Source of the DNA: Vitrella brassicaformis CCMP3155
Taxonomy: Eukaryota; Protista; Chromerida
Direction: 5' to 3'
Assembly: GCA_001179505.1 (NCBI GenBank)
Contig: CDMY01000352.1
Coordinates: 41,827 to 105,826, forward strand
Length of the DNA: 64,000 nt
Part shown: positions 39,833 through 51,800 of the stretch, piece after piece
How the letters are laid out: the number at the start of each line of letters is the position of its first letter
Position numbering within the stretch: the stretch's first letter is position 1
Position numbers and translations under genes: made by a program
The notes under the pieces: model-generated
What the model saw: only the letters and a program-made list of their open reading frames with translations
Database searches by the model: none
What the model was told of the DNA's origin: nothing

Positions 39833-40840
39833 ATGATCAAGATCTACGGCGTGGGGAGGGGACGGGGGAAGGAGGGGGAGAACAAGCCTGCCGCGCCGAA
39901 GCGACAGCCGGGAGAGATTCGGATACAGAAAGGTGAGGCCAACACGACACACACGGGCTAGGGAGGGACACGAATGCACTTGTGTGTGGCGCACGCACAG
40001 CCAGAAGCCACGAGAAACACCAGATTCCTGTTGTGCCTTTCTTTCTGTGTGTGTGCTGTCCTGTCGTTGCTCTCTGCCTGTGGTCAGAGTTGGATGAGTT
40101 GGAGCTTCCGCCGCACACGAGCATCGCCGTGCCGGACAAGAACAACCTGATGGCCTTCCACATCACCATCGCACCCGACGAGGGCTTCTGGAAGGGCGCC
40201 ACCTACAAGTTCGTGTTCAACGTGCCCGGCGCATACCCACACGAACCGCCCAAAGTCAAATGCGAAACCAAGGTGCGCATTTGCGTCGGCGGAGGGGAGG
40301 GAGGGGGATGGTGTGCTTGTGTGGGGGTGGGTGGGCGGGTGATGGATTTGTTGTGGTTGTGCTGTGTGTGTCAACCAGATATATCACCCGAACATCGATT
40401 TGCAGGGCAACGTGTGTTTGAACATCTTGAGGGAAGACTGGAAGCCCGTCCTCAGCATCAACACCATCGTATATGGACTGCTGTACCTATTCCTCGTACG
40501 CACAGCACACACTCCACAGACATGAATGACATGCCCTCTCACACACGCGTAACTGTTTCCATGTGGGTGGTGGATGCCCTAATGTGTGATTGTCATCAGG
40601 AGCCCAACCCAGGCGACCCATTGAACCACGGTAGGGTAGGACACACCTGGGGTGGCGTGACCAACACACACAGAGAGGGAAGCAGAGACCCATGCTGTGC
40701 TGTGTGCAATCGTGTGTGTGTGTGTGTGTGCAGAGGCTGCTGATGCGCTGCGGACCGACCGGGTGAACTTCGCACGTCTGGTCGGGCGGTCGCTCAAGGG
40801 CGGGGTCGTGGCGGGCGAGTCGTTCCCTAAGCTCACATGA
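39833..40840 (+). CDS. UBC12: NEDD8-conjugating enzyme Ubc12/UBE2M
   Basis: MIKIYGVG...PGEIRIQK|ELDELELP...[22 protein letters not shown]|[28 protein letters not shown]...|[10 protein letters not shown]|EAA...GRSLKGG. Confidence 0.95.
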
Positions 40841-46108: not shown

Positions 46109-46408
46109 NNNNNNNNNNNNNNNNNNNNNNNNNNNNNNNNNNNNNNNNNNNNNNNNNNNNNNNNNNNNNNNNNNNNNNNNNNNNNNNNNNNNNNNNNNNN
46201 NNNNNNNNNNNNNNNNNNNNNNNNNNNNNNNNNNNNNNNNNNNNNNNNNNNNNNNNNNNNNNNNNNNNNNNNNNNNNNNNNNNNNNNNNNNNNNNNNNNN
46301 NNNNNNNNNNNNNNNNNNNNNNNNNNNNNNNNNNNNNNNNNNNNNNNNNNNNNNNNNNNNNNNNNNNNNNNNNNNNNNNNNNNNNNNNNNNNNNNNNNNN
46401 NNNNNNNN
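46109..46408. other. Assembly gap (N run)
   Basis: ~300 consecutive N. Confidence 1.
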
Positions 46409-46539
46409 CGCAAGTACGTATTCATGGCGAAACAGAACAGAACAGAATCCGATGCACAAACTATCTATATCTCTCTGTATTTCTCATCGGCCATTGTGTT
46501 GTTGTCTCTGCCTGTCTGTCTGTCTCTGCTCTCATTGAG

Positions 46540-48590
46540 TTAGGCCTTCATGGTCACGTCCTGTGGAGCACTGGCACTGGCGGGTGGGTGGCTGATGGGA
46601 AGTCTGTATGTTTTGTTGAGGGCCACGTTGGGCTCGACAAACGACGACGCGATGCCGCTCACGGCCATCATACCCTGCACACACACCCACACCAGACCAG
46701 CCCGGAAAGACAAGAAACCACCACAGAGACGCCTAAGATGTGTCGATGTGTGTGGTGTGGTGTGTGCGGTGCGTGCCTTGAGGTTGGGTGCGGTGGTGCT
46801 GCGTCGAATGGTGACGAAGCCGCCCTTCATGGCGATCTTGGAGAGGTACTCCGCATCGCCAAAGATGCTCTCGAGCACTAGCCAGGCACCGCGGTACTGC
46901 CCTTGGGTGTAATAGTAGGTCGTGCAGCCTGTCAACGTCTGCACACACCACACACAAAGAGGAGATGCCCGTGCCATCTATCCATGCCTCTGTGGGAACG
47001 ACTGAGGGGGAGGGACGTACCTCGCAGACCACACGTGTGAGTGCCTCCAGCTTCCGCTGCTTGTCGGCCAGCGCCTCGATGCCCCCTGCCGTCGGGGAGG
47101 CCTCGCCATCTTCAGACACAGCCATCGATGCGGTTGACGGCGTGCCCTCGGACACAGCCGACACCTCAGCCGTCACCACATCGATCACCTGAAGAACGGC
47201 ATACACACACACAGTCATGTGTGGGCGAGGGAGGGAGGTAGGCGTGAGAGTGGTGCGCGCAACGTAGTACCTGTTGGATGCCCTTGTTGATGAGCTCGAC
47301 TCCCTTGAGGGCGGCCCGGTCGCTGTGTGATGGTGTGGCGTCGGCCATGGCGCCGCCGCTGCTGCCCTCAAAGATGCGGATGATGTTGAGCTCGCTCGGC
47401 ACGCCGCGCACGTAGTTCAGCACATCCTCCAGCAAACTGGCAGCCTGGGCCGCACCCTGATGGGATGGCAGATAGACACACACACACACACACTGCAACG
47501 GGGTGGTGGGGTGTTTGTGCTGTGTGTACCGACCGGCAGAACGGCCTGGAAGATGGGCTCCTTGATGTATGTGAGGGGGCTGTCGGTAAGGCCCAGCGCA
47601 TCAGCCCGCAGCACCAACGCAACAGTGGTCGCATACTTGTACTTGCTGCACGCACAACACAACGAACAAATACACCCACACGTGGCACACACTCACCCAC
47701 ACACATCGGCCCGGCCCCCTCCCCTTGTGCGTCCCTCCCTGTTGTGTGTCTCTCTCTTCTCTGCGTCCTCCGCACCGCACCGCACCCACCTGTGGTTCGC
47801 GCGCCACGCGCAGTAGGTCTCGGTGGACGTCATGTCGCACGCCGCCATGCGGCCGTCCACGTGGTTGAGGGACTGCTGCAGCACTATGGGGTACGCCTCT
47901 CCCGGCAGATGCAGCTCGTCCAGCAACGCCCGCGTCTTGGCCATCAGCCGGAACAGCCCGTACAGGAACACCTCCTCGGCCGTCACCTCCTGAACGCCCC
48001 CGTCCACACCCACGCCGATGACGTCGGTGAAGGTCTTGCTGCCCGTCCAGGCAGCCGTCAAGATGTCCTTGACCTTCTGCGCGCTGATTTGCTGCACCGT
48101 GGCCGAATCGACGAGGATGTCGAAAAGGTGGAGCGTGAGCGTCCAGCAGGCGAAGGCGCGCAGCTTGTCCTGGAAGCGCCGCTTGGTGTCGCTGCCCTGC
48201 CGCAGGACGCTGGCCGAGTAGGCTATGGCCATCTCCGCCCACTCGTGGCGTCGGCCCTTACGAGGTGAGCCCTCGAGGATGTCCAAATCTTCCAGCACCT
48301 GGTGTATGTCTGCGCGGACCTTGTCGAAGGACGAGCCCAGCAGAAAGTAATTCGTCTTGGGCCGCTGCCGAAAGTTGTCACTGCACATGCACACAGACAG
48401 GCAGACAGACAGACAGGCAGGCAGGCAGAGAGCGAAGGAGGAACACAGACACGATGGGTGCCTGCTCGTGTGTCTGCCCATGGCCCGCAGGCCCTCTGTG
48501 TGTGTCTGCCTGCCCGCCCCCCTGCACACACACAACTCACCTGTCGAGTATCCAAAGGTTGATTTCGCTCAGCACGTCGTCGATGCCCAT
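46540..48590 (-). CDS. Class I isoprenoid/terpene-synthase-fold protein with degenerate metal-binding motifs
   Basis: Spliced ~470-aa helical protein with these motifs in the expected order: LRAFACWTLTLHLFDILVD (DDxxD position), STETYCAWRANH (YxxxR sensor), IKEPIFQAVL..AAQAASLLEDVLNYVRGVPSELNII (NSE/DTE position), ETLTGCTTYYYTQGQYRG (G-x-x-x-W...RY position). Gene existence is high confidence; the fold call is moderate. Confidence 0.65.
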
Positions 48591-48843
48591 CGTGAAAGAA
48601 CAAGATGCGCAAAGTGCTCAAGCTACTGACTGAGCGGGGTGGGAGAGAAAAGGAGGGAAGGAAAAACGCCGCCCAGTGAGCTCGAGCAGTTTCACGAATG
48701 TCCTAGGCTGTCGCATTTGCGAGCTAAGCCTGCAGCCTTAAAAGGGAGAAGGAAGCTGGAGGAATGAGGGTAGCAGAGGGCAGCCACTGCGGCCACACAA
48801 GATCAGCTGACTGACCAGCCACATCACATAGATCGGCTGGCTG

Positions 48844-51800
48844 ATGGGTTTCTTTCGCAAGACTCTGATCTATGGCGGCGGGCTGGGCAGCGCCTGTGCT
48901 GCAGGTACAGTACATGCCCGCATACAGACGAATTTTTTTCATTTGCTATCCCTTTGTGTGTGTGTTGATGTGTGTTGAATGTTGTCTGGCTGTCCGCACT
49001 GCACTGGCTGCGTTGCTTTCTGCAGGTGGTTATGCGGCTCTGCACTACAACCATCAGCAGGGGATGATAGGCCATGCCAACTACTCGTATGCGCCGCCGC
49101 CGAAGCGAGAGGACAACATAGAGAGGATGAAGAAGGAACACTTCGACCTCATTGTTATCGGCGGAGGCGCCACAGGTGACCAATCATGAGATGATATGCA
49201 GAGCAGACGGACAGGCAGCCATGGCTCTTGGGGATGGATGGATGGATGTGTGCAGGGAGCGGTGTTGCAGTGGATGGCGCGAGTCGTGGGCTCAACTGTG
49301 CCTTGGTAGAGTATGACGACTTTGCCTCAGGCACCTCCAGCAGGTCCACCAAGCTCCTGCATGGCGGGGTGAGGTACCTCGAGGCCGCATTCAAGAACCT
49401 TGATATCGGCCAGTAAGAATTATGGTGCAGTGCATCGGAAAGAGAGGCCCGCACGGCACCGAGATTATGGTGGTGGTGGTTGTGGTTGTGTCCCTCACTC
49501 AGGTTGTATTTGGTGTGGGAGGCGTTGGAGGAGCGTGCGCACATGATGAAGAGCGCGCCGTTCATGTCCAAGCCGCTGCCCATCGTCATGCCCATCTACA
49601 ACTGGTGGCAGGTGCCTTACTTCTACGCGGGCATCAAGGCCTACGACTGGCTCGCCAAGCTCGTCTGCTGCTTCGACACAGGTGCGCAGCGCACGCAACG
49701 CAAGCCCCCCTCCCTCCCTCCCTCCCTCCCTCCCTCCCAATACCCATCCATCCAACCAACCACCGATGCTTAGTCCTTTTTGTTGTCTGCCTGTCCATTC
49801 CATTCCCTTCAGGCCTCCCCGAGTGCTTCTACACCAGCCGAGCCAACACCCTCTTTCTGTTCCCCCTCCTCAAGTCGGAAGGCCTTAAGGGCGCCCTTGT
49901 GTATTACGACGGCCAGCACAACGACAGCCGCATGAACATCCAGCTGGCGCTGACGGCATCGATGGACGGCTACGTGGAGGGCATGAAGGGCGCGGCGGTT
50001 GCGAACCACTGCCAGGTGATCGGCGTCATCAAGGACAGTGACGGCCTCGTGGTGAGCTGAGTTGCAACGCAGAGCAGACACACACAAAAAGCGGCGGGGG
50101 CAATGTCATTGCCTATCGGTGTGTTGTGTGATGTGGCATGTGTAGAACGGGATAAAGGTTCGCGACACGGTCAAGAAGGAAGAGTTTGACATTCACGGCA
50201 AAGTGGTCGTCAACTGCACCGGTCAGTGAGAGAGGGAGGGGGCACGCAGCACCCCACATCATAGCCCCACCCACACAGCTGTCCTTGTCATCCTCCATTC
50301 CATTCTGGCCCCCATGCCATGGATGTCATGTCAGGTCCCTTTGCTGACCAAATCCGCGAGATGGCCGACCCCAACTGCCGCAAACTCGTCGCCCCAGCCG
50401 CAGGTACGCCCCGTCCACCCACACAGGACGACCGCATCCACATCCCCGTTTGGAATCGAATTACAGGTGTCCATGTGGTGCTGCCCAAGTGGTACTCGCC
50501 GCCCAACTTCGGCATGATCATCCCGGAGACCACCGACGGGCGAGTGCTGTTCTATCTGCCGTGGGAGGACAATACGATCGCCGGCACGACCGACGCCAAG
50601 TCGGTGCTCACACACCTGCCCAAGCCAACCAGCGAGGAGGTCGACTTCATCGTCAGGGAGTCGGCACGATACCTCTCCCTTGATGAGGCGCAAATAAGGT
50701 GGGTGCGGGTGTGGGTGTGGGCGGGGGATGGATGGGTGGGGAGAAGGTGTATGGGGATTGTGGATGGATGGATGGATGTGTGTGTGTGTGCAGGCAGGAC
50801 ATCAAGGCGTCATGGTCTGGCCTGAGGCCGCTCGTCAAAGACCCCAAGGTGAGCAAGGGAACACTTGTGTGATGTCTTTGTCCCTCTTTCGCTTATCAGT
50901 CAGCAGATGAGGGCAGCACTGCCAAGCTGTCCCGAAGCCACGAGATTGTTGTCGATCCGTCGGGTCTCGTGTCAGTAATGGGCGGCAAGTGGACCACCTA
51001 CCGAAGAATGGCACAGGTAAAGACCGACCGACCGACCGACCGACAGACAGACAGAGAGGGCGGGAGAGGTCATGTGTGATCTTGATGTGTTTGCTGGCAG
51101 GATGCGGTTGACAAGATTCTGGAGGTCCATCGCGATAAGATCAGGACGAGGGCGCCATGCAGGTTATTTACACATACCTTCACCCACCTGGCCACGTGGC
51201 GCCATGCATGTCACTTGCTTGCTGCCGTGTTGGTTGTGTCGTTGCAGAACCAAGAATCTGCTGATCATGGGATCGCACGACCACACGGGCAACTTCCAGC
51301 CAAAGGTAAGTCAGTCGGCACGGCTGGAGAGGCACCCGACCAACACAGAGACCCATCTGCAGATGCGATGCTGCGTGTGATGGATGCGTGTGTCCCTCCC
51401 ATCCCACTGGCCAGGAGGTGAGCGTGTTGGGCGGCAAGCTGCCTCTCCATCTCACCAAACAGTACAACCTCAAACTGCCTACGGTATACACACACACTTC
51501 CAGCACAGCACCCACTACCCAACATGGGGGGCCCACCACATCTACGCAGGCGGAGTATTTGGTGCGGAGTTACGGCTTCCGTGCGCTCGACGTGTGTGAG
51601 CTGGGCAAGAAGGAGGGGCTGCTCGACCCACTTGTGCCGAACCAACCTTTCATCAGAGCCGAAGTCGTCTATGCTGTCAGGTGGGTGCACCGTGGCCATG
51701 TCTGTCTGTGTGGGCGGCGGACATGTGTGTCTGTGTCCGTGTCCGTTTTGTGTGGTCCACCGTGTCTGCAGACATGAGATGGGGTGCACCATCCCCGACG

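Follow-up and report, generated by a model that had tools for sequence, protein, structure and literature searches.

A divergent terpene synthase-fold protein with altered metal-binding motifs, predicted in the chromerid Vitrella brassicaformis

In class I terpene synthases, the DDxxD motif holds two magnesium ions (Mg-A and Mg-C) through its outermost acidic residues, a third (Mg-B) is held by the NSE/DTE triad, and the diphosphate is bound by a sensor arginine and the RY pair. The canonical microbial enzymes (Terpene_syn_C_2 and TRI5), of about 300 to 350 residues, include selinadiene synthase (4okm), 2-methylisoborneol synthase (3v1x), the sesterterpene synthase SmTS1 (29mu), Copu9 (7ofl), pentalenene synthase (1ps1), and epi-isozizaene synthase (3kb9). 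To our knowledge, no class I terpene cyclase has been characterized from chromerids or apicomplexans. The gene considered here lies on the minus strand of a 64,000-nucleotide (nt) stretch of the Vitrella brassicaformis CCMP3155 genome (GenBank contig CDMY01000352.1, positions 41,827 to 105,826), hereafter the window, whose numbering is used throughout; the coding sequence (CDS) extends from position 48590 down to 46540. Its product, the 467-residue protein P0001, would be a highly divergent, non-canonical class I terpene synthase with an all-helical α-domain, presumed from its predicted structure and motifs to be active with a rewired metal site, a reading to which we assign a probability of about 0.5.

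Active class I-type synthases that depart from the canonical motifs have been documented as classes IB (BalTS/YtpB), IC (AsR6), and ID to IF (PeuTPS and others) (PMC11234867). In addition, TriDTC is active with altered motifs, and PhmA has been described as lacking RY pairs (PMC12370890). The PhmA structure (PDB 8kih), titled a type I diterpene synthase "without NST/DTE motif," was itself recovered as a Z 16 match in the structural scan described below. None of these families has been reported from chromerids, and no such enzyme was described in chromerids in the literature searched. The only paper found to pair terpene synthases with Vitrella or Chromera was an antiSMASH survey reporting three "terpene" loci in Vitrella, in which nearly all such matches across the surveyed algae were carotenoid-related enzymes (PMC7073580).

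P0001 resembles the canonical microbial synthases in its predicted single α-domain helical barrel, which aligned with them at Z 16.5 to 20 over 274 to 296 residues, almost the whole of each enzyme. As in those enzymes, helix D ends in an acidic motif and helix H in a second motif, an arginine precedes the helix-G break approximately 50 residues upstream of the second motif, and a tyrosine is found within a G-x3-aromatic-x5-x-Y element near the C terminus. Unlike them, P0001 has no detectable sequence-family membership and is longer, with a variable insertion of approximately 70 residues (280 to 350) and a conserved C-terminal extension (411 to 423). The motifs themselves also differ; when P0001 is taken together with P0002, its one detectable homolog, DDxxD reads D-[I/N]-L-V-D, NDxxSxxxE reads E-D-V-L-N-Y-V-R-G, and RY reads [Q/H]-Y-[R/K].

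With the non-canonical classes, P0001 shares its invisibility to family models, a class I-like predicted structure, and acidic or polar residues at equivalent places, and its gene, like that of PeuTPS as reported, lies outside a biosynthetic cluster. The motif quoted for class IB, DYLDNLxD (PMC11234867), includes a D-N-L-x-D part that resembles D-[I/N]-L-V-D (D-N-L-V-D in P0002) and is regarded as a lead only. However, no sequence relatedness to any described non-canonical family could be detected, as a phmmer (HMMER) search over 1.84 billion cluster representatives returned two proteins only, P0001 itself and P0002 (472 amino acids; E value, 3e−50). P0001 also differs from most of these families in keeping the canonical register, the sensor arginine, and residues D262, Y266, and R268 of the NSE helix, which makes it look more like a canonical synthase that has diverged than like a solution reached independently.

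Predicted fold and catalytic motifs

A class I terpene synthase fold of the microbial type, with an all-helical α-domain, was well supported for P0001 by structure prediction. The single-sequence AlphaFold2 model was poor (predicted local distance difference test [pLDDT], 39), and a VIA search with it returned mixed helical matches at Z 6 to 8, in which terpene synthases were matched by residues 86 to 206 only. The working AlphaFold2 model was generated from the alignment of P0001 and P0002 alone; neither templates nor terpene synthase sequences were supplied. Its predicted template modeling (pTM) score was 0.60 and its mean pLDDT 53.6, with residues 35 to 260 mostly above 60. In a Foldseek search of the PDB with this model, the top 50 matches were class I terpene synthases throughout (best E value, 4e−4; template modeling [TM] score by target up to 0.63), among them BcBOT2, pentalenene synthase, epi-isozizaene synthase, and the N-domain of geosmin synthase. 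VIA-align comparisons with SmTS1, Copu9, 2-methylisoborneol synthase, and selinadiene synthase gave Z 19 to 20 over 274 to 287 aligned residues (root mean square deviation, ∼4 Å), covering model residues ∼9 to 392 and almost the entire target chains.

A VIA scan of 48,161 PDB representatives, independent of Foldseek, likewise placed terpene synthases in all top 50 positions (Z 15.3 to 19.9; 250 to 298 residues). These came from bacteria, fungi, plants, coral, and a giant virus, and the top 50 included neither chain-elongating prenyl synthases nor squalene/phytoene synthases. Across the whole scan, 107 chains had Z values of ≥8; the benchmark quoted by the tool for mostly helical models without a clear Foldseek match is a typical best Z of ∼14. 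The ESMFold model of P0001 in the ESM Atlas (pTM, 0.74) had a bacterial Terpene_syn_C_2 cluster as its sole meaningful neighbor (TM by target, 0.80; 275 residues), and by ESM language-model features the Terpene_syn_C_2/TRI5 clusters were nearest for both P0001 and P0002 (0.91 to 0.92). An earlier sequence-only reading of the window had set an all-helical terpenoid synthase α-domain beforehand as the structural test of its proposal; AlphaFold2, Foldseek, VIA, and the ESM Atlas agreed on this outcome, which rests on predictions throughout.

The same reading had placed four motifs in the order of class I synthases, and all four were found where it had placed them. The first, W96...L-F-D104-I-L-V-D108, is encoded at positions 48107 to 48145; it had been given as W-x7-FDILVD, which is right in location, with the correction that six rather than seven residues separate W96 from F103. 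The sensor segment, E204-T-Y-C-A-W-R210, lies at 47801 to 47821. The triad segment, L-L-E261-D-V-L-N265-Y-V-R-G269 followed by E-L-N-I-I, maps to 47403 to 47435, and the C-terminal element, L371...Q383-Y384-R385-G, to 46888 to 46935. For alignment with known enzymes, a degenerate DNA pattern for the geosmin synthase triad was used to find actinomycete and myxobacterial genomes; a PF19086 search of five such genomes gave 30 loci, from which 24 synthase domains were cut out as templates for hhalign.

Alignment of the two-sequence profile with these 24 domains scored 26.1 (P = 0.014) across residues 33 to 276. All 100 of 100 column shuffles scored lower (maximum, 21.1; median, 14.1), as did the reversed profile (13.5). 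Against the eleven non-geosmin synthases alone the score was 26.7 (P = 0.011) in an unchanged register, while the geosmin synthase N- or C-domains alone gave short N-terminal alignments only. In this register W96 was paired with a conserved Trp, F103 with the residue preceding DDxxD, and D104, I105, and D108 with D1, D2, and D5 of that motif. Y206 and R210 were paired with the Y...R of the diphosphate-sensor segment, as the claim that ETYCAWR is a diphosphate sensor had anticipated; the distance from the Arg to the triad is 46 residues in the templates and, from R210 to E261, 51 residues in P0001. E261, D262, N265, Y266, R268, and G269 were paired with N, D, S, Y/F, R/K, and E of NDxxSxxxE, respectively, and N275 with the conserved Asn after the triad. 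The profile alignment thus reproduced the two substitutions previously read by eye, DDxxD to DxxxD and NDxxSxxxE to EDxxNxxxG. Helices in the AlphaFold2 model (residues 83 to 108, 203 to 212, 215 to 226, and 244 to 268) end or break where these motifs are expected, and the sensor R210 precedes a helix-G break at residues 213 and 214.

The RY region was not aligned by hhalign, including in a run with the C-terminal 86 residues. The proposed change of RY to QY was nevertheless matched by spacing, since G373-x3-Y377-x5-Q383-Y384-R385 (G-x3-H-x5-H-Y-K in P0002) fits the G-x3-W-x5-R-Y spacing of 21 of the 24 bacterial domains. The structural alignment with selinadiene synthase ends at model residue 392 and chain residue 319 and, if gap-free, would put Y384 on the residue that we take to be the RY tyrosine.

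P0001 and P0002 are 32% identical overall. Identity rose to 87% in the best 15-residue window, which is on the triad helix (256 to 270), and was 67% in the sensor segment (204 to 218). D104, D108, R210, E261, D262, N265, and Y384 are invariant in the two proteins, and position 385 is R or K. At the triad, all of the ligand positions are changed (N to E, S to N, and E to G), whereas the non-ligand residues D262, Y266, and R268 are canonical. As judged from the two sequences, this pattern looks like that of a remodeled site under selection and not of a decayed one. A further element, V411-T-I-R-x5-A-P-N-L-K423 (46777 to 46815), is conserved in both proteins beyond the synthase core; it has no canonical counterpart and no confident modeled structure, and could act as a lid or an extra diphosphate contact.

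Proposed activity and competing explanations

Given the known metal and diphosphate roles in class I synthases, equivalent roles can be proposed for residues of P0001. The substrate would be a prenyl diphosphate, most likely farnesyl diphosphate or geranylgeranyl diphosphate made by the polyprenyl synthases of the cell, bound so that its diphosphate lies where the helical barrel opens. Elsewhere in the genome, at least three loci for polyprenyl diphosphate synthases were identified, which could supply this substrate. D104 and D108 on helix D, at positions 1 and 5 of DDxxD, may hold two Mg2+ ions, and E261 and N265 at the end of helix H may hold the third with one protein ligand fewer, as G269 stands in place of the usual Glu. 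R210, before the helix-G break, together with Y384 and the basic residue at 385 (R or K), would contact the diphosphate. Ionization would then yield an allylic cation, shaped by the conserved aromatic residues W96, F103, W128, Y206, W209, Y266, and Y378, and the end product would be a hydrocarbon or an alcohol. The enzyme is probably cytosolic, as expected for a protein with no presequence.

A more tentative proposal is that P0001 and P0002 might form a new subclass of active class I synthases, with a one-ligand-fewer Mg-B site and a cytosolic sesqui- or diterpenoid product, and might include the first known terpene cyclase of chromerids and apicomplexans. Such a subclass would be recognized by D-x-L-V-D on helix D together with E-D-V-L-N-Y-V-R-G on helix H.

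Several results weigh against an active synthase. No sequence method gave a significant match. Pfam searches with each exon, P0001, and P0002 returned nothing credible, and no terpene synthase family appeared even at E values of up to 10; the models PF19086, PF03936, and PF06330 accordingly lacked a significant match. NCBIfam yielded an XpsI match (E value, 0.07) that was judged to be noise and nothing else credible, and a profile search of the PDB with the P0001 and P0002 alignment returned nothing. The profile-profile signal was weak, with an hhalign probability of 3% and a P value of ∼0.01. Confidence in the two-sequence AlphaFold2 model is modest and falls mostly below a pLDDT of 60 after residue 262, so the C-terminal RY equivalent relies on spacing judged by eye, and an ESM Atlas shape search with this model returned only noise (all TM scores of <0.3). 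None of three canonical motifs is intact. In D104-I-L-V-D108, positions 1 and 5 of DDxx(D/E) are invariant and position 2 is not Asp (I, or N in P0002); in E261-D-V-L-N265-Y-V-R-G269, a segment that P0001 and P0002 share, the NSE/DTE triad has metal-capable residues at its first two ligand positions and Gly at the third; and in the RY equivalent, placed by spacing only, Tyr384 is kept and is followed by a basic residue, and the Arg is replaced by Q or H. Moreover, two sequences are a poor guide to which residues are essential, and no terpenoid-related biosynthetic cluster was found among the neighboring genes.

The losses at the metal site raise the question of whether the protein is a terpene synthase descendant that no longer catalyzes. 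Such a protein would keep its barrel to act in sensing, transport, or regulation, with a prenyl diphosphate, an isoprenoid, or another lipid as its ligand. Both members of a tiny family encoded by a single-copy gene have lost the third Mg-B ligand, the RY arginine, and the second Asp, and the 70-residue variable insertion and the conserved element at 411 to 423 could serve partner binding. We consider such a binder unlikely: D104, D108, E261, N265, R210, and Y384 do not vary and conservation peaks in the triad helix, as would be expected more of a metal and diphosphate site, even if a binder would conserve residues too, and synthases without NSE/DTE or RY are known to be active (8kih; PMC12370890; PMC11234867). 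The changed triad ligands beside the retained D262, Y266, and R268 may instead point to a site remodeled for different chemistry in the same fold, such as prenyl transfer to an acceptor, diphosphate hydrolysis, or the use of a methylated or irregular prenyl diphosphate. This fold is common to enzymes of varied chemistry, and basic residues beyond the canonical set (K83, R85, K89, K215, K217, R414, and K423) are also invariant. Nevertheless, a change of chemistry of this kind seems improbable to us, because the top 50 structural neighbors are all cyclizing or ionizing class I synthases, elongating and squalene/phytoene synthases are missing from them, and there was no positive sign of an acceptor site.

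A third concern is that the likeness to terpene synthases arose as an artifact of modeling a helical protein from two sequences, P0001 belonging to an unrelated helical family, for example, one resembling the cyanobacterial CO2-hydration protein ChpXY. The low mean pLDDT, the mixed matches of the single-sequence model, the empty Atlas shape search, and the silence of the sequence methods are all compatible with this, and ChpXY clusters scored 0.89 to 0.91 by language-model features for both proteins. It is nonetheless very unlikely. ESMFold and AlphaFold2 converged on one fold without terpene synthase input, and in the poor first model the confident region already resembled terpene synthases. 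The later model reached Z 15 to 20 over ∼280 residues and nearly whole target chains, well above the quoted benchmark, with no other kind of chain in the VIA top 50. The register of the sequence alignment also landed independently on the catalytic motifs. A ChpXY-like identity was rejected, since no such chain was present among the structural matches despite the feature scores. The sequence-only reading had offered a divergent terpene synthase or a pseudo-enzyme that binds prenyl groups; the computed fold and the substitutions are in keeping with that pair of options, and both are retained here, with an active, non-canonical class I synthase as the preferred one.

If active, the enzyme would represent a novel branch of isoprenoid metabolism in the algae that are the nearest photosynthetic kin of the malaria and Toxoplasma parasites and, if the full proposal is true, the first terpene-forming enzyme of the chromerid-apicomplexan lineage, with a signaling or defense role. 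It would also provide a natural experiment on how far a trinuclear metal site can be rewired, with the triad ligands changed and the neighboring non-ligand residues kept. The protein is in addition a clean case of one that is invisible to family models yet recognizable by predicted structure. The fold class itself was already known; what is new, and supported by the models, is a non-canonical protein of this fold in a lineage without described examples. Its value is limited at present, as the function is only predicted and the family has two members.

Gene structure, transcription, and relatives

Seven exons could be read from the raw sequence, giving a CDS of 1,404 nt (467 codons and a TAA stop codon). 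The gene is transcribed and spliced as modeled. In each of four public runs from three studies (X1, X2, X7, and X8), a single contig of ∼1.6 kb carried all six junctions with zero differences, and the multi-exon gene proposed from the sequence was thus recovered to the exact exon, with the transcripts using the frames claimed. The contigs covered 46440 to 46673, 46776 to 46938, 47021 to 47186, 47269 to 47455, 47533 to 47645, 47790 to 48380, and 48541 to 48667 or 48678. Approximately 63% of the sequence words of the locus were present in the four runs, matching the expectation for spliced mRNA. The spliced model is identical to the uncharacterized 467-amino-acid record P0001 ("unnamed protein product, Vitrella brassicaformis CCMP3155"), which was recovered by a word-index protein search in which the query was the open frame containing exon 2 and only the exonic stretch was scored; the protein is also recorded as an MMETSP transcript marked complete. 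This source agrees with the sequence-only reading, which had assigned the DNA to a probable alveolate, V. brassicaformis being a chromerid alveolate.

The transcribed unit spans at least 46440 to 48678, with its 5′ end at or beyond 48678 and its 3′ end at or beyond 46440. The coding part of exon 1 (48541 to 48590) encodes M1 to D16 and two bases of the S17 codon, as read from the sequence, P0001, and the contig junction. The start codon lies at 48588 to 48590 and is preceded by an in-frame TGA 30 nt upstream, from which it follows that the N terminus is complete, with no extension, presequence, or targeting peptide. Exon 2 (47790 to 48380; residues 17 to 214) encodes the N-terminal helices together with D104-x3-D108 (48107 to 48121), W96 (48143 to 48145), and the sensor R210 (47801 to 47803), and exon 3 (47534 to 47645; residues 214 to 251) encodes the conserved K215-x-K217-Y218, which directly follows the predicted break in helix G. 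Exon 4 (47271 to 47456; residues 252 to 313) contains the region of highest conservation, A256 to G269 (47403 to 47444), which includes E261-D-V-L-N265-Y-V-R-G269 at the NSE/DTE triad position. Exon 5 (47021 to 47188; residues 314 to 369) is mainly the low-confidence variable insertion that separates the triad helix from those at the C terminus. Exon 6 (46777 to 46938; residues 370 to 423) carries G373-x3-Y377-x5-Q383-Y384-R385 (46891 to 46929) and ends with the conserved element at V411 to K423. The coding part of exon 7 (46540 to 46674) adds residues 424 to 467, a poorly conserved tail predicted to be disordered, and the TAA stop codon (46540 to 46542).

Five of the introns have GT-AG borders. 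The last, intron 6 (46675 to 46776; 102 nt), has non-canonical GC-AG borders, identified in the sequence and by the joint in the contigs of all four runs; the junction in P0001 reads APNLK/GMMAVSG. This intron remains in frame if translated through, and a scan of open reading frames alone would therefore miss it. Introns 1 and 3 consist largely of low-complexity repeats, (CTGY)n at 48385 to 48441 and (TG)n at 47463 to 47502, which were skipped in contig mapping. An assembly gap of 300 N (46109 to 46408) begins 32 nt past the last mapped transcript base at 46440; as the contigs run on past this base, the true 3′ end may fall in or beyond the gap.

The gene is single copy, with no paralog in the 72.7-Mb genome of V. 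brassicaformis, and its family has two detectable members. The protein had been described as an orphan, which holds in that no family or paralog was found, and is amended by the existence of P0002. Word-index searches with exon 2, and then with the P0001 and P0002 alignment as a profile, also returned these two proteins only, and no Chromera velia homolog was found in the protein searches, although the library includes public proteomes. P0002 is 32 to 35% identical to P0001 over residues 14 to 426. It derives from a 1,653-nt intronless contig (L009) assembled from the public run ERR11260140; the presence of untranslated regions (UTRs) at both ends and the lack of introns identify this contig as mRNA. 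L009 ends in a (TG)n tract resembling those in Vitrella introns and UTRs. P0002 shares the motif residues, length, and architecture of P0001, as well as a complete N terminus without a presequence. It differs in the sequence and length of the variable insertion and in its shorter C-terminal tail, and also at the first motif (D-N-L-V-D, compared with D-I-L-V-D in P0001) and the RY equivalent (H-Y-K, compared with Q-Y-R).

As expected by the sequence-only reading, profile searches of Pfam, NCBIfam, and the PDB assigned the protein to no confident unrelated family. A subthreshold Pfam match to DUF374 (E value, 0.08 to 0.14) was judged to be noise. The best PDB sequence match of P0001, PdxS (E value, 0.085), was not considered meaningful, and the others were weaker. 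Assignment to the trans-isoprenyl diphosphate synthases (PF00348) found no support, with no Pfam match and a single D-x3-D acidic motif. The canonical terpene synthase Pfam families were likewise not found in the V. brassicaformis genome, the PF19086 search having been shown to work on the five bacterial genomes.

Genomic surroundings

Two recognized genes neighbor the locus, one for a FAD-dependent oxidoreductase resembling glycerol-3-phosphate dehydrogenase and the other represented by an exon of a ubiquitin-conjugating enzyme gene only. The oxidoreductase gene (48739 to 50825, plus strand) is head to head with the synthase-like gene; a dinucleotide-binding motif, GGGATG, lies near 49150, and the frame at 50322 to 50825 has a Pfam DAO match. 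Contigs of this neighbor start at or before 48739, and the synthase-like transcript reaches at least 48678, so that the two 5′ ends are at most ∼60 bp apart, an arrangement suggestive of a compact bidirectional promoter. Further away, an open frame at 39985 to 40743 (plus strand) had a UQ_con match (E value, 9e−11) and is presumably one exon of the E2 gene.

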